Shown: positions 1-62,789, counted from the stretch's first letter. The stretch: DNA of 64,000 nt from Trichoplax adhaerens (GCF_000150275.1 NW_002060955.1:474886-538885); one strand, 5' to 3'. Made by a program: numbers and translations. The notes: generated by a model from the sequence alone, not told the origin.

Positions 1-39
1 ATTGCTCGTATAAACAGCAAAATTTAACTTACTGATAAT

Positions 40-600
40 ATTGACTCGTGTCGTAGAGTAAATTTTAGTATGCATGATACAGACAATTTATATTCATCAT
101 TTATATAACGGAGTCAATAGAATTGATCAAAAACTACTGTAAATCTGCAATAGCAGCTTGCGGTGTATGTCCAGTATTTAGTATTTATGATGCGGGCTAT
201 TTTATTCATCCTCTACATGATGGAGTCAATTTTATTGACTCAACCCTACTGCAATTCTGTAATATCCACTTGTACTGTGTAACTAGTATTTAGTATTTAT
301 GATACTGGCAATTTCTATAAAATCAATAGCCCTGCATCATTGACATGATGGAGTCAATGGAATGGATTAAAATCTATTGTAAATTTACAATTTCAGCTTG
401 TAGTGCATACCCAGGACTTTGTATTTATGATATAGGCTATTTGTAGAATGTAAATACTGTCGGCTGTATCATTTCCTTGATGGTAGCAATAGACTTGGCT
501 ACAAACTATTGCGAATCTACAATATTAGCTTGTACTGCATATTTAGGATTGAGTATTTACAGTATGATGGGACAAAGCAGGCTAATGTACAAATTTATAA
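40..600. repeat. Degenerate tandem repeat, about 110-130 bp unit
   Basis: The ggagtcaat...actactg...agcttg...gtatttatgat motif recurs at about 108, 218, 346 and 478, with a further relic at about 866. Confidence 0.75.
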
Positions 601-4229: not shown

Positions 4230-4960
4230 TAATAATCGCCTAACTAGTAGATAAATGGAATGATGCGATTTTAAATGTTTATTATGGTTCATTTTAATCC
4301 CTAACACATAGTTGATACTTGTGATAAGCAATTGAAGTCGATCGTCTAACGACTGGATAGATAAAATAATATCACTTTTGATGTTTATTACGGGTCATTT
4401 TAATCATTTAGTTGGTAATTATAGTAAGCAATCGACATCTATTAATTACCTAACGGCTAGATAGATGGAATGAAGCTACTTTAGATGCTTATTTATTATG
4501 AATCATTTTAATCATTTAGTAAGTATTTGTGATAAGCAGTCGACGTCTATTAATTATCGAACGGCTAAATAGGTGAAATGATACAATTTTAGATCTTTAT
4601 TATGGATCATTTTTATCATTCCGTCAGTAATTGTGGCTAGCAATTGACGTCTATTATCTAACGGCTGGAAAAATAAAATGATACCACTTTAGATATTTAT
4701 TATAAATTTTTTTAATCATTTGGTTGGGAACTGTGATTAACAATCGATGTCTATTAATTATCCAACGATTAGATAGGTGAAATGATGCCATTTTAGACGT
4801 CAGTATACAGAAGTATGGATCATTTTAAATATTTAATCGGCGATTGCAATAAACAGTTAATGCCGATCATTGAACGCCTAGACAAATGAAATGATACCAT
4901 TTTAAATAGATGGCATGGGTTATTTTAGATATTTAAACGATATGAACCATCAGGCTAATT
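4230..4960. repeat. Degenerate tandem repeat, about 110-120 bp unit, upstream of EPHX2 A; relic copies at about 17440-17900 upstream of B
   Basis: aaatgat....ttttagatgtttattatggatcatttta recurs about six times. Confidence 0.8.
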
Positions 4961-11899: not shown

Positions 11900-14141
11900 T
11901 ATGTACGTAGGTTTTACTTTCCCATGATCTGATGAATATCAGTCATAAGCTGAAAGTACTATAGCAATCGCTCATAAAATAGATGTCATCACGACTTCAT
12001 AGGATGGGCAGTGAGTGACATTATTTTTGCAAATGATTGCTTGTATGCTTGATAGTTAGTGTATGATGTTGAACACAACGCTCATATACATTATCAATAT
12101 CAGTCTGCCGCCGCAATATACATTCTACTTTCCCGTAATTTAATAAATCTGAGTAATCACTAAATGGACTATAGAAATTGCTGGCAAAAATGATGACGTG
12201 CCAAGATAGCAATGACCACCTGTTCAGCTATAGATAGTAGCCTTCAAGAAATAAAGTAGTTATTAGTACTTAGCAATAGAACTCCAGGGTAGTTATCATA
12301 CAAGCAAACTAAAGTTATCCTTTTTTTACCTCCTTGGTACTGTAACACTAATTTGTTGATAAAGTTTATCGACGCTAGGCCATCGCTGCACTATACTCGT
12401 ACATACATTCTACTTTCTTGCGATCTGATCAATCTGAGTGATCACTGAATATACTATAAAAATTGCTGGCAAAAATGATGTCTAGATCACTTATACAGCT
12501 CCAGATAGTATCCTCCAAGAATTGAAGTACTTTCGCTCGTAGTAAGCAATAGAAGTCCTGTATAATCATCATAGAGGTAAAGCAACATTATCCTTTTTCG
12601 CCTCCCTAAGTAGTCATAGGGTTGAGACAGCAAACTAGCGTAATACTTGTAGGACTGTACCACTAGTTTGCTTACATACGGTAGTTTATCAACGTTAGCC
12701 CATCGCTGCACTGAACGAGTATATTCTACTTTGCCGTGATCTGATAAATCTGAGCGATTACTGAATTTACTATAAAAATCGCTGGCAAAAACGATGTCGC
12801 GATCACATACTTAGCTCTAGATAGTACCCTCCAATAAATGAAGTACTTTTACTGTAATAAGCAATAGAACTCCAGTATAGCCATCATAGAGGCAAACCAA
12901 GATTATCTTTTTCGCCTTCTGAAGTAGTCATTGGATTAAGACAGCAAACTATCGTAATGTCTGTACTACTAATTTGTTTATATACGGTTGTTTATCAATG
13001 TTAGCCCATTGCTACAGTACTGTATATATTTTACTTTCCTGTCATTTGATGAATTTGAACGATTACTGTATTTACTCTAAAAATCACGAGTAAAAACGAT
13101 GTCGTGATCACCAATTCAACTCTTAATAGTATCTTCCAAGAAATGAAATACTTTTACTAGTTAGTACTAAGCAATAGAGCTCTTGGATAGTTATCATCGA
13201 GACAAACCAAAGCTATCCTCTTTAACAGCTTAGGTAGTTATTAGATAGATGTAATAAACGAATGTTATGCTTGTAGTACTGTTACCACTAATTTGCTAAT
13301 ACTAAACTATAGAGTGAGGCAAATTAAAGTTATCCTTTTTTTTATCTGCTTAGGTAGTCATTGGATTGATGCAGAAAGCTAGTGTTATGTTTGTCGTACT
13401 ATACCATTAGTTTGTTTATACTAAACCATGGACTATGAGTTTCCTATGATCTGATGAATCTGAGCAAATAGTGAATGGACGATAGAAATCGCTCGCCAAA
13501 AAATGGCGTGATGACCTATTTAACACTAGATAGTACTCTGCAAGAAAATTGAAATACTTTTACTAGTACTAAGCAACAGAACTTCAGGGTAGTCGTCATA
13601 GAGGTAAACCAAAGTTATCCTTTTCTACCTGTTTAGGTAGTCATTAGATTGATTCAGTAAACTAGTGTTATACTTGTAGCACTGTACCACTATGCTATAA
13701 CTAATAAACCATGGACTACTAAGTTTCCTGTGATCTGATCAATCTAAGCGATCACTAAATGGACGATAGGAATCGATGGTAAAAACAATATCGCGGAGAA
13801 CTATTCAGCTCCAGATAGTACCCTCCAAGAAATAAAGTACTTTTACTAGTACTACCCAGTAGAACTCTAGTGCAATCATCATAGTGGTAAACCAGCATGA
13901 TGTTTTTTACCTCCTTAAGTAGCTATTAAATTGAGACAGCAAACTAGCGCTATTTATAGTACTATACCACTAGTTTGTTTCGATGGCTTATCCATGCCAG
14001 TATTATACATACTGCTTTCTTGTAATCTGATGAATCTGCGCGATCACTAAATGGACTATAAAAATTGCTCACATAAATGATGTCGTAATTACCTCTTCAA
14101 CCCTAAATACTACGTTGCAAAAAAAGAAGTAATTATAGTGG
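11900..14141. repeat. Degenerate satellite, about 8 units averaging 300 bp, continuing between the LTRs to about 16150
   Basis: tttcc..(g/a)atctgat(g/c/a)aatctgag...ggactata at about 11918, 12128, 12413, 12729, 13035, 13440, 13724, 14016. Confidence 0.85.
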
Positions 14142-32450: not shown

Positions 32451-35400
32451 CTATAACGTTACATTAATATCGCAGATAAATTGAAATACAAACAATGAAA
32501 CAAGATATACTCTTAAATGAAACTAATAACCGATATTAAATGATAGCTTGTAAATGCTCGACTTTGCCATATTGATCGAATGCGAAATATAAAATATAAC
32601 AAACTTGAGCTGTACAGTATATGTATCGTGTATGTAAAAGTAGCCGGAGTGCACAAGTAGAATCTAATGAATCGCGTACAGGTTGTTTGGTTAACTTGTA
32701 ACTAATATCGTAAGCATTAACAACATTGAACTATTCGTACTTTCTAAAGATGCATGCAATGATCATATTCTTTTAAGGGGAGTAGATGGATAGAGAGAAT
32801 AAAGAAGTATGTGTAAGTCATGCACGTATTTTCACTGATGCTTTACGAAATCCAATTATTATTATAATGCATAAACTGGATATCAATTTGTTTTCATCTA
32901 CAGCAAAAAACTAACATAACCACTACTCGATCTATATTCTGTACCCGGTTCAATAGCACCTACCGTAAATATTGCATGTTCGGTAGTCGTATTTAATTAA
33001 TAAAAACTGCATGCATAAGCAACAACTTATATTGCTACTGCATAATATAATTGCGATGCTAATTCGTTTATTTCGACATTATTATTTCAAATATAATCAA
33101 TTTTCGTTTGTTGATTCAAGCATTTTAGAAAGTAATCAAAACATAATGATGTAGCTGTTATATCTTTACTACGTTACTAACATATTAATTGATAGAAGTA
33201 ACATTGATTTAGATCTTTCGTTTTGCACGTTATATGTATTCGTATAACTACTTGTTTTCTGTTTAAGATCGTTCAATTCTAATGGCTGGAAAGCTGTCAA
33301 GTCTTATATTGGTAAGAATGATTGATGTTTCTTAATGAAAAGAAATAATAAGGTTTCCTTACAGATTAGGACTTCAATTTAAAAATGATCTATTATCTTG
33401 GTGGTTGGCAAAGTTTTCATCGTGTAAAGCTACTTCAAAGCTCATTCTATTGAATATTAAGTGTTGTCAAGCTGAAACCAAATAAAATTCTATATTTATA
33501 TATTATTATCTTTGTCACTGATGATGTACGATGACCAGAATTTGAAGTATTGATATCATCCATCTAATAATGATATTGAACAAATCTAGAATACAAAATG
33601 ATAAAAAAGGCATTTCCCTTGCTGATACTGTACATGCTATTCTTCCCTTGATTGACGAGTTTTAGAAGCATGAATTGTCATAGTTGCAGATGCAAGAATA
33701 CGATTTGATTCTGTGTGAATATTTATTATACGATTTTATTCTACTTCTGTATTCGTATTACTTGAATGAAATTTGTTTGTTATGCTGACTAAACGTTAAC
33801 CTTTTAATAATTCATTTCTCTTTATATGATTATCTGCTAATGACTGAATATTGACGATAATGCTCTATCAACTTATGGGTGTTCGATTTATAGTTGATAG
33901 AATAAGCTATTGCAACCTTATAGCTAATTAGTAATGGTTATGTCTAGTTATTGAAGAATAACTAAAGATTCGATTTTAAAACTATGAAGGATAGGACGAA
34001 TGGATAGCCTTTCGACTAGACGAACATGTTTAGACACACCTCTGTCTACTAATCGCGATTGACTATTTAATTTGCAATTTTAGAGTTATTAAGGTTTGGA
34101 TATAGGTGATATAAAGAGTCATAGACTTGTTACCTGGAACCGTTATGACGTATATAAAATTGCAAATTAGATTAATCAAAAGCATGATCAAGAATTGCCG
34201 TGAATACATCATATACAATTTAAGTTAAGTGAAGGAAAACATAGTTCTGTTGTCAACCAAAGCATTATACTCGTTTTGAGTAATGTATTTGCACACGTGA
34301 ACTGTTTATGTTGCATTCATTATAACCGGTGATAAAACAACATAAAAGTAGCGTTTTAATGAGTTTGAATTATTGGATCCCTTTATGGTTGAGACATTGG
34401 CTACATGTTTTAACTCTAGTATGAATAAATTGATTCAAGATGATGTCGTATTTGGACAAAGTTACTTCAAAACTTTTTATCTAAAGTAAAAACAGTAATT
34501 AAAATCGATCGCCGCTTAATTTTATCATCAACTTGCCCCTTCAATTTAGCAATATAGTATTGGCTTTACCGACTAATCTACTCGAACAGACTATACTTTT
34601 TCTTATGTTTGAATATCATTGTTTACACGGAATGATCGTTTATTGAATTCAGATACATTTGCGAACTTGAGCCAGTAAGTCAGTGTGCAATATTATCCAA
34701 TTAGTCAACTGATTCAATGCTGTATATAGACTTACCTTGGCGCTGTTGTCTGCTATTATCTTGTGCTTTTCCATATTGACTTGAGTGTTCGCTTTCTTCT
34801 TCTATTGATCAAAACAAGAGATGAGAATGTGTTGGACAGATGCAAGACTGCTACAGTAGTAATCAATTACACAAATCACCTAGTGATGATGGCGATTGGT
34901 CGTCGATGACTGTTTGATTGTCTGCATATTGAGCCAAAAGCTGTCGAATGATGTTGGCTATTTCCAATGGAGAAGGCTCCTTCTCGTTTTCTTGCAATTG
35001 ATTGGAACAGTAATTAATTTGTTTCTCATCCTCCACAATTTGAGGATGACTCTCTCCGTAGACATTGCGTAGACTGTTAATGGACTTTCGATATAATGCG
35101 ATTGCTTGACGATAATTCGACAGTTTACAATTGACTACAGCTTGGCTTCGATACAACTGGGCAGTATGAAGATGGTTCTCACCTAGCGTTACTAAAAAGA
35201 TTTGCAGTGACTTGTTTAACATTGATAGAGCATCGTCATACTTGCCTTGATCTCTATAGACACCACCAATACTGTGATAAGTCGAAGCAATACTTGGATG
35301 ATTGTCACCAAGTTGTGTTAGTTGAATCTTCAGTGACTTGTTATACATCGATAGAGCGTCGTCATACTTGCCTTGATGATTATAGACACCACCAATGCTG

Positions 35401-37481
35401 TGATAAGTCGCAGCAATACTTGGATGATTGTCACCAAGTTGTGTTAGGTCAATCTTCAGTGACTTGTTATACATCGATAGAGCGTCGTCATACTTGCCTT
35501 GATCTCTATAGACACCACCAATGTTGTGATAAGTCGTAGCAATACTTGGATGATTGTCACCAAGTTGTGTTAGTTTAATCTTCAGTGATTTGTTATACAT
35601 CGATAGAGCGTCGTCATACTTGCCTTGATCATTATAGACACCACCAATACTGTGATAAGTCGCAGCAATACTTGGATGATTGTCACCAAATTGTGTTAGT
35701 TGAATCTTCAGTGACTTGTTATACATCGATAGAGCGTCGTCATACTTGCCTTGATCATTATAGACACCACCAATGTTGTGATAAGTCGCAGCAATACTTG
35801 GATGATTGTCACCAAGTTGTGTTAGTTGAATCTTCAGTGACTTGTTATACATCGATAGAGCGTCGTCATACTTGCCTTGATCATTATAGACACCACCAAT
35901 GTTGTGATAAGTCGCAGCAATACTTGGATGATTGTCACCAAGTTGTGTTAGTTGAATCTTCAGTGACTTGTTATACATCGATAGAGCGTCGTCATACTTG
36001 CCTTGACGATTATAGACACCACCAATACTGTGATAAGTCGTAGCAATACTTGGATGATTGTCACCAAGTTGTGTTAGTTGAATCTTCAGTGACTTGTTAT
36101 ACATCGATAGAGCGTCGTCATACTTGCCTTGATCTCTATAGACACTACCAATGTTGTGATAAGTCGTAGCAATACTTGGATGATTGTCACCAAGTTGTGT
36201 TAGTTCAATCTTCAGTGACTTGTTATACATCGATAGAGCGTCGTCATACTTGCCTTGATCTCTATAGACACCACCAATGTTGTGATAAGTCGTAGCAATA
36301 CTTGGATGATTGTCACCAAGTTGTGTTAGTTGAATCTTCAGTGACTTGTTATACATCGATAGAGCGTCGTCATACTTGCCTTGATCTCTATAGACACCAC
36401 CAATGTTGTGATAAGTCGTAGCAATACTTGGATGATTGTCACCAAGTTGTGTTAGTTGAATCTTCAGTGACTTGTTATACATCGATAGAGCGTCGTCATA
36501 CTTGCCTTGATCATTATAGACTTGCCCAATATTTGTATAAGTTACAGCAATACTTGGATGATTGTCACCAAGTTGTGTTAGTTGAATCTTCAGTGACTTG
36601 TTATACATCGATAGAGCGTCGTCATACTTGCTTTGATCTCTATAGACACTACCAATGTTGTGATAAGTCGTAGCAATACTTGGATGATTGTCACCAAGTT
36701 GTGTTAGTTGAATCTTCAGTGACTTGTTATACATCGATAGAGCGTCGTCATACTTGCCTTGATCATTATAGACTTGCCCAATATTTGTATAAGTTACAGC
36801 AATACTTGGATGATTGTCACCAAGTTGTGTTAGTTGAATCTTCAGTGACTTGTTATACATCGATAGAGCGTCGTCATACTTGCCTTGATGATTATAGACT
36901 TGCCCAATATTGCTATAAGTTACAGCAATTTTTGGATGATTGTCACCAAGTTGTGTTAGTTGAATCTTCAGTGACTTGTTATACATCGATAGAGCGTCGT
37001 CATACTTGCCTTGCTTATCATAAATACTTCCAATGTTAAGATAAGACTCACTCATATTGATATCTTCATTTTCTGACCATTCTGATTTTATTCCAAGTGA
37101 TTTGTTAAAATCTTTTAAAGCTCCATTCAAATCACCTTGCAATTCTTTAATGCACCCTTGTCTATCAAAGCACTTTGCAAATCTCACTCTATCTTGTAGT
37201 TGTTCGGCTAATATCTTCGCATTTCTTCTCCATTTATCAGCTTCTATCAGTTTATATTGATTTAAATAACAATCGGCTATGTCCAGATAAATATCGTGTT
37301 CAAGTTGATGGTGATGATTATTATTACTATTCTTGGACATAGATTGGATTTGAGTAACAGCTTCTTTGTAATGTAATAGAGCTTGTTCATAATCGCCTTC
37401 TTCAAAGCATTTCATACCTTTTTTGTGGATAGATTCAGTTTCATCAAGGATAGTCAATTTTGTGGACTCATATGCCCCCAT
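32194..37481 (-). CDS. N-myristoylation motif + TPR array (42-aa kinesin-light-chain/NPHP3-type repeats) + C-terminal death domain, about 974 aa
   Basis: Exon 1 37481-34880 (the 872-aa ORF up to CTA G|gtgatt); exon 2 34801-34736 (caatag|...CAA G|gtaagt; EEESEHSSQYGKAQDNSRQQRQ); exon 3 32450-32194 (ttatag|; DPKEHFFQIANTIGSDWTRLAATL...AMKILNKW...LQAALRQINRNDIV). Both junctions are phase 1 and in frame. The TPR ORF is certain; the splice to the death domain is inferred and extra small exons cannot be excluded. Confidence 0.8.
35237..37010 (-). repeat. Coding tandem repeat, 14 x 126 bp
   Basis: The anchor catacttgcc lies at 35237 and 37001, 1764 bp apart (14 x 126). Units are nearly identical in DNA. 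Confidence 0.97.
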
Positions 37482-56369: not shown

Positions 56370-56730
56370 CTGTAATATTAAAATTGGTTTAGTTTACAAC
56401 GTGAAATAATCTATCTATATGGCTTTAATATTACAATACAGTAAGCAAATAGCAACATAAGTAATTGCAATTTTTAAAGCTCATATTCTGACGGTTGATA
56501 TTATAACCAAAACGTTACCACAATTTTTAGTTAAAGCATAATATTAAAATTGGCTTAGTTTAGAACGTGAAGTATTCTATCGATATGGTTTTAATGATAC
56601 AATAAGCGAATAGCAACATAAGTAGATGCAATTTTTAACAGCTCATATTCTGACGGTTGATATTGTAGCCAAACTGCTATGACAATTTTCAGTTAAAGTG
56701 TAAAATTAATATCGGTTTAGACTACACGAT
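56370..56730. repeat. Tandem duplication of about 170 bp
   Basis: taatattaaaattgg.ttagttta...gctcatattctgacggttgatatt occurs twice, with the start of a third unit at about 56700. Confidence 0.85.
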
Positions 56731-58740: not shown

Positions 58741-59619
58741 AATCATGCGATCATGCCTTGCTTATTTACTTATACTAAAACCAGCAACTTTCATTAACAG
58801 CAAGGAGAAACTGTTGCATACAGCTGCAATTTAATCATGCTGCTTGCCAGTTTAAATTGGTCAGTAGCTTGTGTCTACTGGCATTACATCAGTATTAATA
58901 ACGCTTACAGAAATTAGGTTGATTGACTTATGATAATTTATAATTTGGTAGAACGAAGAAAGAAAGTTCTATCAAGATTACTGATTCTACTGTACAGCCT
59001 AATAAGGGATCCAGGAGAAAAATTATAGTAATGTTGTTAGCGCCTAAATATTGCATGATAATCACCAATTCGTTAAGACAGCAAAGAATCGATTAGGCTG
59101 ATGAGCGCTAGGTAGTGGTTTTAAAATATTGCAGATCTTCACTAGATCAATTAGCATCTTCTGATAGTGATAAAAATGATTCTGCAATTCGAGCTATGTC
59201 CCACTTTTACCACACCTTGGAGGAGGTACTTTAATTAATTGGGAATTCAATTATTTAGTAGTCAGTAATTAATTCATGTAAGCATCCTTTTGGGTGATTT
59301 AATAATACTTCGATGGATATTTATGCAGCATAAGCAAAAAATTTAGATTGCCAGCGATATGGAAAGAAATAAGTGATATTATCTGCCTTTATTAAATTAA
59401 AGATTGCTAATTTTATGATACTGGCAAATGTCGAAGACTAGAATAAATTGACAGGAGAGGAGATTGATTTTTTTAGTTATTGCTATTTAATAGAAAAATT
59501 TTCCGACCGCAACTGTTCAATTCTCACGCAGTATGGGAACTTATACTGTAACGCTTCTAACCCCAAATTATTGCTGTAGAAAAGTAAATCGGTTGGCGAT
59601 AATATATCTCTTTTCGTCG

Positions 59620-60022
59620 ATTAATGTATAAAAGCTTTCCATACTTTATTTTGTCGGTTAAAGTATAAAAGCTTTCCCATACTTTCTTTTGCTGATTAAA
59701 GCATAAAAGCTTTCCCATGCATCGTTTTATCGATTAAAGTATAAAAGCTTTCTCATGCATCGTTTTGCCGATTAAAGTATAAAAGCTTTCCCATACTTTG
59801 TTTTGCCGATTAAAGTATAAAAGCTTTCCCATGCTTCCTATCGCCGATTAAAAATAAAAGCTTCCCCATGCTTCGTTTCGCCGGTTGCAGTACCAAAGCT
59901 TTCCCATACCTTGTTTCGCCGATTAAAATATAAAAGCTTCCCCATGCTTCGTTTCGCCGGTAGCAGTATCAAAGCTTTCCCATACCTTGTTTCGCCGATT
60001 AAAATATAAAAGCTTCTCCATA
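59620..60022. repeat. Minisatellite, 37-38 bp unit, about 10-11 copies
   Basis: gattaaagtataaaagctttcccat + variable 13 nt; most units carry a HindIII site (aagctt). Confidence 0.93.
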
Positions 60023-62789
60023 CTCCGTCACGCCAGGAAAGAAAAGATTTTCCGGTGATGTCAAAGTTAAAACAATTGTCATTTTATTCTTATATAGAAT
60101 TCTTTAATTACTTCTACTAACGATCTTTTTAAATCCTGATGAAAATACTACTTGTGTTTCTACATGATACACCTATGACCGCCCTTGGCAAACGAGAAAA
60201 ACAGTAGACGATCAGTGCTCTTCATTTTTGAAAAAAGCAGCTTTACAAGGCTAGAAAATCGATTACCATAACTGCCTTATTATTTGAAAAGAGAGAAAAT
60301 AAAATGAGTTTAAATTTTATTTTGTAGAGGTTGCTTAAGTTCTTATCCATGTTATGACTATTCTCGCTATCTCGGACATTATATGAAGATTTGTCATGGC
60401 TAAGCGAAAATAACAGACGGCAAAGATCTTTCTGTAGTAGTTTAAATTGATAGCTTCATAGTAATGGCCATGTTTCAATCTAGGGTAGCTATGATCAATT
60501 TATTTTATATCAAGAAGGTTGCGAACTCATGCAATTGTTGATATATTGTATCTTGGAAGACACCTTCTACTATCTCTTGCAGTAAATATTAACATTCCTA
60601 TAGCCTTTTAATTGCTTTATGGTGGAATATTGCAAATTTCACAGCATTTAAGCCATCATTAATACATCCAGGATTACAGTCCTGTCAGCTCTTGTAAATT
60701 GCTGATTATACAGTATAATTCAATGTAGAACTCAATGCTATCTAAAAAGGCTGAAGATTAAATCCAAATCTAAGTAGCAATATTCACCCTGATAATATAG
60801 TTTTAACACCTCATAGACAGCAATAATATTGGCTGTAGTAACAACCATTTTATACCTTTTCATCCCAAAGTGAACTTGAAATTTAAAACATGCATCTAAA
60901 CCTCAGAAATTTAAGAAATAGCACTAGAGTTTTTGATAACCTACAGATGCAATCTGCTTTCCATAGTATTGTATGAGATGACCTTTATAAAATGACTAGC
61001 TACAAAACCGATTTGGACTGGAAGGTGATAACTATTGAGTTAATACTAGAAAAGAGTGTCTGGTCTACGTATTCTGTTCGAGTAAAATTGCTTTATAACA
61101 CTTAATAATAATCCCCTAGCATAAGTTATATTGAATTATTACGAAAGGTAAAATAAATTTTTCTTTAATTGCCTTTATCCATGAATCGTTATGCACGTAC
61201 TTTCATCATTCTAATACGGATAAAGTGGATCAAAGAGTTAAAATTTTTCGATAGTTTGGGTACCATGAAGGAGGTAATCAACACTTTTAATGAGCTAGAT
61301 GACTTGGAGATACTAATCAGAATTGGATATACACTGCTGTATTCATGATGGTCATCAGAAATAAAAATGGAGGTATGACAAGAATAAAGTCATGAGGGGA
61401 TTTTTTTTGTAACTTACTCATTGCGTTGCTGTATCCTTCCTTGAACATTTTCTACACCATTTCATCAACGTGCCAAACTACCAGTAGTAGAACCTGAATT
61501 AAAACTATTATCTTCGATTATGTGGCACTGAAGGACTTGCCCATTTCATAGCATGTAATCACGACGCCATTGCTCTATTTCCCACTGAGGGATAACTTTA
61601 ATCGAGTCATGATAAAATATCTTAAAGCTGTAGACTTATGCGACGACATGGACTACTAAAAAGACTGAGAAAAGACCTTTTTGAGTAGTCCATGGTTGCG
61701 ATAACAAGACTGCTGGTAATGAATTTGTAATCCAATATATTAACATGCAAGGAAAATATAAAAATGTTGAAATACCAACTAGCCTACAGCGATTCTGGTG
61801 AATTTATAGTTGATGAACTGCAAAGGATTGATCAATATTCGGGACTTGTGTATAGAAATTTCTTTTTTTTCTTAACGTGTTGAAACAAGGTAAATTTACG
61901 TTAAGTTTCATCATCAAGGTAATGAAAAGCAAATTACTTTCTGTTCTTGTGCGTACACGCACATGATATTATACATTCATAACATCGACCTTCCGCATTT
62001 TATTAGTAATAGTCCACGCTGGTCATTTATAATGGTGATGTGATAGGGATCGATTTTCTAGTAAATAAAGATGAAGAAACTTGAATCCTACAAGTTTTTG
62101 TATCTACTGTTAGTAAAAAAAGTAGAGCCATGCTTATTTTAGCACCAGTACTAGTACTAGTACTAGTTGAGGAGTTCCATTGCACTCTAAGCTGTAGGAC
62201 TGTATATATGCATCTTTATTTACTTCTACGCTTGTTCATCCGGGTAAACCCGGTAGGATAAAACAACAAAAAAATGATTACCTACGGTAGTCATCAGATC
62301 AATTTTCGGATCTATTTATGATGTTTACAATGTTACTTATTTTTAAAAACTCTATGTACATAATAGGACATTGAAATAACTATCAAATGATTACACGATA
62401 CTTCAATGTTCTATTCTCTTTTGCTCTTCTACATTGCACATCTTGAATTGAGGGACATATCGTACATATCCATTTTTCAAAGTGGGTGGATTTTCTTCCT
62501 TGAGGTATACAATAAGGGCATTTAGCGATTTCCTATTAACGAACGCAAACATCCATAAGAACAAGTTTATACGTGTTAGGTTTTAATTTTTAATAGGTCG
62601 CTTTCTTTTTTCATGAATGTCCTCTTTGAAGTTATCTCAGCAGGCAAGTATCTTAACTTAGTCCCCCTAAAGTTTTGTCTCCATGTTGACGGCAAGGTGG
62701 AGATTTTTGTGATTACTGTGTAGTTGATCGATCATTCAATCTGCTCTATTACTTCAAAGTCTGATGTCTCCAGTTTTTATTTCAACTAA

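Follow-up and report, generated by a model that had tools for sequence, protein, structure and literature searches.

Recent homogenisation and diversifying selection at six codons per unit in a KLC-type TPR array of Trichoplax adhaerens

A single-exon gene of the placozoan Trichoplax adhaerens, lying in a 64,000-nucleotide stretch of genomic DNA (GCF_000150275.1 NW_002060955.1:474886-538885; "the window" below, with positions counted from its first letter), encodes an 872-residue protein built largely of 15 tandem tetratricopeptide repeat (TPR) units of the 42-residue kinesin light chain (KLC) type. The 126-bp units are near-identical, silent sites included, except at a handful of codons, and at six of these (2, 5, 9, 12, 13 and 31) the amino acid diversity is under diversifying selection. 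The interpretation favoured here, to which we would give a probability of roughly 0.7, is that the product is a long KLC-type TPR solenoid whose array has been recently homogenised while selection favoured diversity at the six codons, and that it belongs to a groove-binding repertoire tied to a death- or immune-type system. A preliminary description, made from the sequence alone, had proposed diversifying selection on a modular, code-like recognition surface; that interpretation is partly supported.

The window corresponds to 474886-538885 of contig C1402 in an assembly (G000) of 105.6 Mb and 1414 contigs. Apart from a mechanical antisense product inside the array, the 872-residue open reading frame (ORF) is the only one of at least 150 amino acids in the window. 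A stop codon lies two codons upstream of its ATG, and the chance of 873 open codons at the base composition of the window (G+C ~32%) is ~4e-30. The gene belongs to the eukaryotic host and is not bacterial. The gene and its parts are as follows.

34863..37481 (-): complete single-exon coding sequence, 872 amino acids plus TGA stop, from the ORF scan
37053..37481 (-): N-terminal domain, aa 1-143; three degenerate TPR-like helical hairpins, from the AlphaFold2 model and homology to the ROCO relative P0036
36927..37052 (-): unit 1, aa 144-185; divergent N-terminal unit of the array
35289..36926 (-): units 2-14, aa 186-731; 13 homogenised core units
35163..35288 (-): unit 15, aa 732-773; core-like helix A, divergent helix B and loop, leading over to the C-terminal cap
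34863..35162 (-): aa 774-872 and stop; a TPR-like hairpin that caps the C-terminus, and the tail; homology to the end of the Roc-COR TPR head

Tandem Repeats Finder reports one array (35205..37045; period 126, 14.6 copies, 94% matches, zero indels), which in codon register becomes 15 tandem units of 126 bp, or 42 residues, covering aa 144-773 (35163..37052). The high coordinate H of unit k is 37052 - 126(k-1), and codon p occupies H-3p+1..H-3p+3. Mean identity among the 13 core units (546 residues) is 91.1% for amino acids and 94.0% for nucleotides; over all 15 units amino acid identity is 86.6%, and in the best 252-residue stretch the identity at a lag of 42 reaches 95%. The canonical TPR numbering used in the preliminary description is upheld by HMMER, which pairs the first 30 positions of the unit one by one with the first 30 of the consensus TPR (CTPR) and unit positions 39-42 with CTPR 31-34, leaving 31-38 as the insertion of the 42-residue class. 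Y4, I7, G8, Y11, A20, Y24, S27 and P40 thereby align with CTPR W4, L7, G8, Y11, A20, Y24, A27 and P32.

Variation within the core is strikingly confined, as had been claimed from first inspection. Only 21 of 126 nucleotide columns vary among units 2-14, 17 of them in codons 2, 5, 6, 9, 12, 13 and 31 (hypergeometric P = 7e-14) and 15 in the set fixed a priori as the ligand contacts of HOP (positions 2, 5, 6, 9, 12 and 13, P = 4e-12; PMC1261162); nucleotide identity is 67.8% inside the seven codons and 99.2% outside them. The residues found are V/T/A at position 2 (S in unit 15, E in unit 1), S/T/H at 5, N/S at 6, Q/S/G at 9, N/R at 12, H/D/R at 13 and Q/E/K/D at 31. Every variant listed in the preliminary description is present, and two singletons it had missed can be added: G15S in unit 4 and L35F in unit 11. 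Only two codons of the core vary purely synonymously, namely codon 8 (GGG in the three V2/Q9 units) and codon 26 (AAA in unit 12, 35589..35591, which is the isolated AAG/AAA change placed earlier near 35587). Many of the differences in the variable codons are multi-nucleotide swaps (GTA/ACG/GCG, AGC/ACA/CAC, CAA/AGT/GGT, AAT/AGA). Targeted mutagenesis of the diversity-generating-retroelement type was considered as their source and rejected: the changes are not adenine-specific and involve all three codon positions.

The contrast between variable codons and scaffold is large in terms of substitution rates. By the Nei-Gojobori method, the 35 scaffold codons of the 13 core units give a synonymous divergence (dS) of 0.0235 and a nonsynonymous divergence (dN) of 0.0038, with dN = 0.42 in the seven variable codons. 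Self-written GY94-type site models, run on IQ-TREE codon trees and reproducing the IQ-TREE M0 log-likelihood (lnL) exactly, favour a class of sites with dN/dS (omega) above 1. For the window gene alone (14 unique units), M1a/M2a gives 2ΔlnL = 7.2 (p = 0.027), and M7/M8, the comparison that had been proposed as a check, is significant at 2ΔlnL = 9.3 (p = 0.0096); the omega > 1 class comprises sites 2, 5, 9, 13 and 31. With four sister arrays added to the window array (112 unique units), M1a/M2a gives 2ΔlnL = 71.7 (p = 3e-16) and places 15% of sites at omega ~3: sites 2, 5, 9, 12 and 31 with P > 0.94, with 6 and 13 at omega ~1. Since these models ignore recombination, a tree-free test was added, using only pairs of units from the same array (11 homogenised arrays, 188 units) and bootstrapping. 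Nonsynonymous diversity (piN) at codons 2, 5, 9, 12, 13 and 31 is 2.1-4.0 times the silent diversity (piS) of the scaffold, with bootstrap lower bounds above 1, and no other codon passes in these 11 arrays. Diversifying selection at these six codons is thus found by the site models and by the tree-free ratios. The seventh position named at the outset, codon 6, drops out: its piN/piS is 0.67, its posterior omega ~1, and it is mostly a conserved Asn.

Silent sites also record how the array has evolved. At codon 26, 13 of 14 window-array units have AAG, against AAA in 76-100% of sister-array units; codon 3 is ACT in 100% of window-array units and mostly ACA elsewhere; and the window array differs from more distant arrays by 6-8 fixed third-position differences. 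These array-specific silent variants are common to all unit types of the window array. Scaffold silent diversity is 0.06-0.10 within homogenised arrays versus 0.31-0.44 between distant ones, while scaffold nonsynonymous diversity is 0.02-0.08 throughout. The near-fixation of array-specific silent variants bears out the earlier suggestion of concerted evolution (or very recent array turnover).

A nearby duplicate allows a direct comparison of the array with its surroundings. Paralog L013 (C1402:576995-580828, +), 65 kb from the gene, is an inverted segmental duplicate, containing an assembly gap close to the 3' end. Identity to the flanks of the window gene is ~96% over a stretch from ~480 bp upstream to beyond 1.2 kb downstream, with non-coding DNA ~4% diverged and an N-domain dS of 0.039. 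The L013 array has at least 26 units against 15 in the window gene, in another order and with other residues at the groove positions. Unit number and order thus turn over much faster than the flanks, a comparison of repeat number that comes from this one segmental duplicate in a single assembly and concerns paralogs, not alleles.

The same positions stand out across the genome. At least 316 candidate matches to the 872-residue protein were found in the assembly, and 24 extracted arrays (407 units) were analysed. Entropy peaks at position 12 (3.16 bits), followed by 2 and 9 (3.12 each), 31 (2.98), 5 (2.57) and 13 (2.55); positions 33 and 34 are intermediate, position 6 stands at 1.39 bits, and most scaffold positions are below 1. 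The 325 best units contain 203 distinct five-site helix-A words, and several helix-A motifs of the window array recur in paralogs. Mutual information between variable sites is low (0.3-0.8 bits family-wide), so that across the family the diversity is largely combinatorial.

All of the long homogenised arrays examined are stand-alone. Elsewhere, several TPR arrays cluster together at C1410:8.19-8.23 Mb, C1413:0.89-0.91 Mb and C1389:0.265-0.287 Mb. On C1389, Roc-COR open frames follow closely downstream of TPR arrays, in the same orientation, and two near-identical TPR-Roc-COR genes are ~13 kb apart; one scanned locus of this type had too few units above the score cut-off for within-array statistics. 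An apparent 7814-aa open frame on contig C1339 was rejected, having been inflated by runs of N read as X.

How might the selected positions be arranged in the protein? Pfam assigns it to TPR_12 at 991.9 bits (cut-off 30.1; 15 stretches) and to TPR_10 at 451.9 bits (cut-off 27.5), both above the gathering thresholds that mark 42-residue KLC-type TPRs; the only families found are of the TPR clan, plus a weak MIT match. An AlphaFold2 model of aa 1-437, based on an alignment of 14 family members, has a mean predicted local distance difference score (pLDDT) of 92.7 and a predicted template-modelling score (pTM) of 0.88. It places N-domain helices at 7-27, 31-46, 55-74, 78-95, 98-115 and 118-135, and in each unit a helix A at positions 40..13 (16 residues) and a helix B at 17..35 (19 residues), with position 31 in the helix-B extension. 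The 42-residue period, the long helix A-turn-helix B, the consensus residues and the loop proline are all those of KLC-type TPRs. Foldseek ranks the model closest to TPR solenoids that bind peptides, namely APPBP2 with degron, KLC1/2 with cargo peptides, LGN and OGT.

When helix A is drawn as a wheel, positions 2, 5, 6, 9, 12 and 13 all lie within 120 degrees of arc (mean 184 degrees), across from the packing positions 4, 7, 8 and 11 (mean 30 degrees); of 1716 possible sets of six helix-A sites, only 4 cluster as tightly, in keeping with the expectation that the variable helix-A residues would lie on one face. Magliery and Regan found TPR positions 2, 5, 9, 12, 13, 33 and 34 to be the most variable generally, on the concave face (PMC1261162). 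Taken with the wheel, the predicted secondary structure and the canonical numbering, this suggests that positions 2, 5, 9, 12 and 13 probably occupy an exposed stripe of helix A equivalent to the concave face of TPR structures (PMC1261162). The preliminary description, which had helix-A positions 2, 5, 6, 9, 12 and 13 lining the groove, agrees with the published concave and ligand-contact positions; position 31, which it listed in addition, lies in the helix-B extension.

The proposed link to death- or immune-type recognition comes through the two ends of the protein. The N-domain is 45% identical to residues 1-145 of P0036 (E = 1e-40), and window 34866-35288 is 47% identical to its residues 300-470 (E = 3e-39), the alignment reaching the last residues. 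P0036 is the Trichoplax sp. H2 protein annotated as "Nephrocystin-3" (RDD39303), which maps to the assembly at 99% identity. In P0036 and two further ROCO relatives (P0026 and P0070), the TPR head leads into Death, Roc and COR, and the protein closes with a death-fold domain at the C-terminus; Civiero et al. (2014, PMC4104024) noted at least 17 ROCO genes in T. adhaerens. The window protein resembles the placozoan ROCO proteins in its three-hairpin N-domain, its cap and tail, its TPR unit type and its occurrence in the same genome, but differs in having 15 homogenised units and ending after the cap, where P0036, P0026 and P0070 carry few, mutually diverged units and continue into Death-Roc-COR. 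It has only the TPR head in common with them, and neither the Roc GTPase nor the COR that follows it in ROCO proteins. A tblastn search of the window with the Death-Roc-COR parts of the three relatives gave no match below E = 0.7, and the nearest Roc-COR match on contig C1402 is at 1.7 Mb, i.e., 1.2 Mb away. Given the homology of both its ends to TPR heads in the TPR-Death-Roc-COR-(CARD/Death) proteins, the stand-alone protein is most likely a sensor, adaptor or decoy tied to cell-death or immune-type recognition.

Several points weigh against the interpretation as a whole. Inside the variable codons themselves, the local dN/dS (Nei-Gojobori) is ~1, and an excess is visible only relative to scaffold dS; the high local dS arises because multi-nucleotide swaps are partly counted as silent, which makes scaffold dS the informative comparison. 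The site models held the topology and the relative branch lengths fixed, used naive empirical Bayes posteriors, and took no account of recombination, which is expected between repeats and inflates tests of this kind. Linkage between the variable sites of the window gene sorts its units into about three types (V2-T/S5-Q9; T2-H5-R12; A2-H5-N12), so that few independent events are represented and the gene-only tests are only moderately significant. Position 31, located by secondary structure only, is outside the helix-A stripe. As to the immune connection, the protein has no signalling domain, no Death, Roc, COR or NOD exon was detected in the 34 kb downstream of the gene, and the link is one of end-domain homology only.

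The first of these points is what would be expected under relaxed constraint, with exposed groove residues free to vary, the scaffold under purifying selection, and homogenisation lowering silent diversity. Also in its favour, the ratio of variable-codon dN to scaffold dS falls to ~1 in older, less homogenised arrays, and the 112-unit model leaves codons 6 and 13 at a posterior omega of ~1. That model nevertheless rejects omega <= 1, and the within-array excess of piN over piS (2-4 times at six codons, bootstrap bounds above 1) is likewise more than freedom to vary would give. There is also a mechanical argument: conversion or crossover tracts cannot skip single codons, so homogeneous silent sites one or two codons away from codons that are 32% diverged imply that selection acts against the homogenised variants, keeping or regenerating the diversity. 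Relaxed constraint is on these grounds unlikely.

Another possibility, which appears rather less probable still, is that the variable face is there for packing or self-interaction (the protein docking its own tail, homo-oligomerisation, or superhelix fit) and has no part in recognising foreign or variable ligands. In favour, the protein stands alone as a solenoid, and TPR grooves such as that of KLC bind intramolecular autoinhibitory segments, according to the part of the literature consulted. A structural role, however, predicts conservation or covariation, where 203 different five-site words occur in 325 units; it does not predict omega > 1; and the positions concerned are those that set specificity in characterised TPRs (PMC1261162).

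A neutral history, with recent tandem growth from about three founder unit types whose variable codons merely mark the founders, would require no selection. It is suggested by the strong linkage of sites into three types in the window gene, by the identity of units 3 and 5 and the single changes separating neighbouring units, and by the modest gene-only likelihood tests. Founders differing at up to 12 nucleotides in six codons and at none of ~100 other positions, every silent site among them, would nonetheless be unexpected under neutrality. The same six codons, moreover, are the most variable across all 24 arrays and exceed scaffold silent diversity in the within-array comparisons of 11 arrays, and the array-specific silent variants cut across the unit types; this explanation is largely refuted, with very little probability left to it. 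Least credible of all is misassembly of a collapsed repeat as the source of unit variants or order: 1.9 kb of 94%-identical units in a draft of 1414 contigs, N gaps in several paralogous arrays and the lack of an independent copy of the exact protein on record would permit it, but the window array has no Ns, indels or frame breaks, its variants are codon-structured, affect the same codons as in other arrays and use helix-A motifs that recur in paralogs, and errors would strike silent and scaffold positions equally.

Under the favoured interpretation of a homogenised, diversifying solenoid, the protein would form a superhelix of three degenerate hairpins, 15 regular 42-residue KLC-type units and a cap. 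Recent unequal crossing-over, gene conversion within the array, or both, keep the 126-bp units near-identical down to their silent sites. Purifying selection maintains the scaffold, and selection favours diversity at codons 2, 5, 9, 12 and 13 of helix A and 31 of the helix-B extension, since the amino acid diversity there goes far beyond the neutral divergence of the array. The variable residues may line the concave groove, and the near-invariant Asn6 could provide a backbone-binding ladder of the kind seen in other TPRs that bind peptides. Extended peptides or protein surfaces might then be bound with specificity set unit by unit, in which case the whole family would amount to a germline repertoire of binding specificities.

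The closest parallel is with fungal NLR repeats, as had been suggested from the first, and the comparison is apt in internal identity and in the presence of a few positively selected sites (PMC4986451). KLC-type TPR motifs in fungal NLRs, such as the NB-ARC/TPR genes of Podospora anserina, have more than 85% internal identity and show repeat-number polymorphism, and modelling on KLC2 put their positively selected sites on the concave face (Dyrka et al., 2014, PMC4986451). With 91.1% identity over 546 residues, the window array exceeds the threshold used in that study (at least 85% unit identity over at least 100 residues), and like the fungal arrays it shows positive selection at a few helix positions, on which the site and tree-free tests agree. 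A changing repeat number, pointing to concerted evolution, is likewise a feature of the fungal arrays and, between paralogs, of the window array family. A solved 42-residue P. anserina array (PDB 4Y6C/4Y6W) is similar enough for 4Y6C to match the window units at E = 2e-19. The differences are equally clear: the fungal arrays are C-terminal sensors of NOD (NACHT/NB-ARC) proteins, whereas the window protein is animal, lacks NOD or effector domains and has relatives fused instead to Death-Roc-COR; and three positively selected sites were reported at the fungal locus against six in the window family. With no central NACHT or NB-ARC, and Pfam matches limited to the TPR clan and weak MIT, the window protein is not an NLR.

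Bacterial arrays provide a second comparison. Of the 120 best database matches, 35 have at least 80% identity at a lag of 42, and six arrays that were inspected (P0106, P0024, P0009, P0016, P0094 and P0081; bacterial or metagenomic, of CHAT-TPR and NB-ARC-TPR types) are as homogenised as the window array. Their most variable positions are 2, 9, 12, 13, 31 and 41, and this recurrence across kingdoms gives independent support for a functional role of position 31 in 42-residue TPRs. The CHAT-, NB-ARC- and NACHT-TPR arrays of Microcystis and Okeania share the scaffold of the window units (..LGxxHPxxA.S/TY.N.A/G.LY..QGxY..A..), but are prokaryotic, fused to a CHAT protease or STAND NTPase, and 36-45% identical to the window protein; position 5, mostly invariant in them, is hypervariable in the window family.

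No 42-residue TPR protein is better characterised than kinesin light chain itself (PDB 3NF1, 3ZFW, 6FUZ; 26-31% identity in fold matches), which holds cargo peptides in the concave groove of its A helices (PMC5642895). Its six diverged TPRs, its heptad-repeat N-terminus that binds kinesin heavy chain and its conserved orthologs have no counterpart in the window protein, which has 15 units and begins with three TPR-like hairpins, with no coiled coil; it is thus not a KLC ortholog.

Some further observations concern the locus. The first six residues (MGAYES; 37464-37481, -) match the consensus for N-myristoylation (G2, S6), and so does MGIWTS of P0036, the Roc-COR relative. As a family feature this was rejected: the ~4%-diverged paralog begins MAAYES and others MANQ, MPKE or MANE, most paralogs starting with MA, MP or MD. 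Past the TGA, the same frame (34736-34865, -) reads L L L, TAG, QSCICPTHSHLLF, TGA and ~25 codons, with a consensus GTAAGT donor near 34736. Paralog L005 ends ...GDLCSLALL*, four codons beyond the stop of the window gene, and P0036 has a "CIC" motif after the aligned position and a first exon running to ~aa 483 before its first intron. The stretch 3' of the TGA may be a vestige of a longer first exon.

Antisense ORFs of 81-152 amino acids within the array (35207-35539, 35585-36043, 36428-36673 and 36680-37039, +) were rejected as genes, being periodic translations of the opposite strand of the repeat and thus mechanical by-products. Non-coding tandem repeats occur elsewhere in the window at 2147-2844 (period 166/332 bp), 4345-4797 (104), 12363-13973 (316/283), 56373-56720 (162) and 59612-60024 (38 bp, 10.8 copies). 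An exact-sequence look-up of the 872-residue protein in public assemblies and clusters found no record. Queried with the whole protein, a word-index search yielded generic KLC-type TPR proteins alone (28-54% identity) and no close placozoan ortholog, which is not proof of absence; with the N-domain alone there was no match in the same type of search, too limited to show absence.

Concerted evolution combined with hypervariable sites on the ligand face is a hallmark of fast-diversifying recognition modules, known from fungal NLR WD40, ANK and TPR repeats, brown-algal NB-ARC-TPR genes and bacterial STAND- and CHAT-TPR proteins. Among metazoan ANK, TPR and WD proteins, such repeats were found in only 0.8% (Dyrka et al., PMC4986451). 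In the literature searched, no description was found of homogenised TPR arrays with hypervariable sites in placozoans or any animal; the Trichoplax H2 genome paper says of TPR genes only that they confound ortholog calling, and a survey of placozoan immunity judged placozoan NLRs with C-terminal TPR or WD40 repeats to be unlikely recognition molecules. The evolutionary regime itself is therefore known from fungi and bacteria, and it is the animal, NOD-less setting that appears new; what is distinctive here is an animal gene without NOD, with Roc-COR/death-fold relatives, and with position 5 added to the variable set.

A bolder proposal, possible but doubtful as matters stand, is that the stand-alone arrays and the Death-Roc-COR-CARD fusions together would make up a placozoan germline repertoire for intracellular recognition of non-self, symbionts or allogeneic cells, working through Roc-COR and not through an NLR NTPase. 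Each unit would read a short stretch of peptide through its five or six variable residues and the invariant Asn ladder, in a modular code that could be deciphered. Whatever the ligands, the family is a natural library of near-identical scaffolds with differing groove residues, useful for deriving or engineering rules of TPR-peptide specificity. With at least two dozen arrays, hundreds of groove variants and kinship to the heads of death-fold Roc-COR proteins, it suggests that a simple animal may diversify TPR grooves for recognition.

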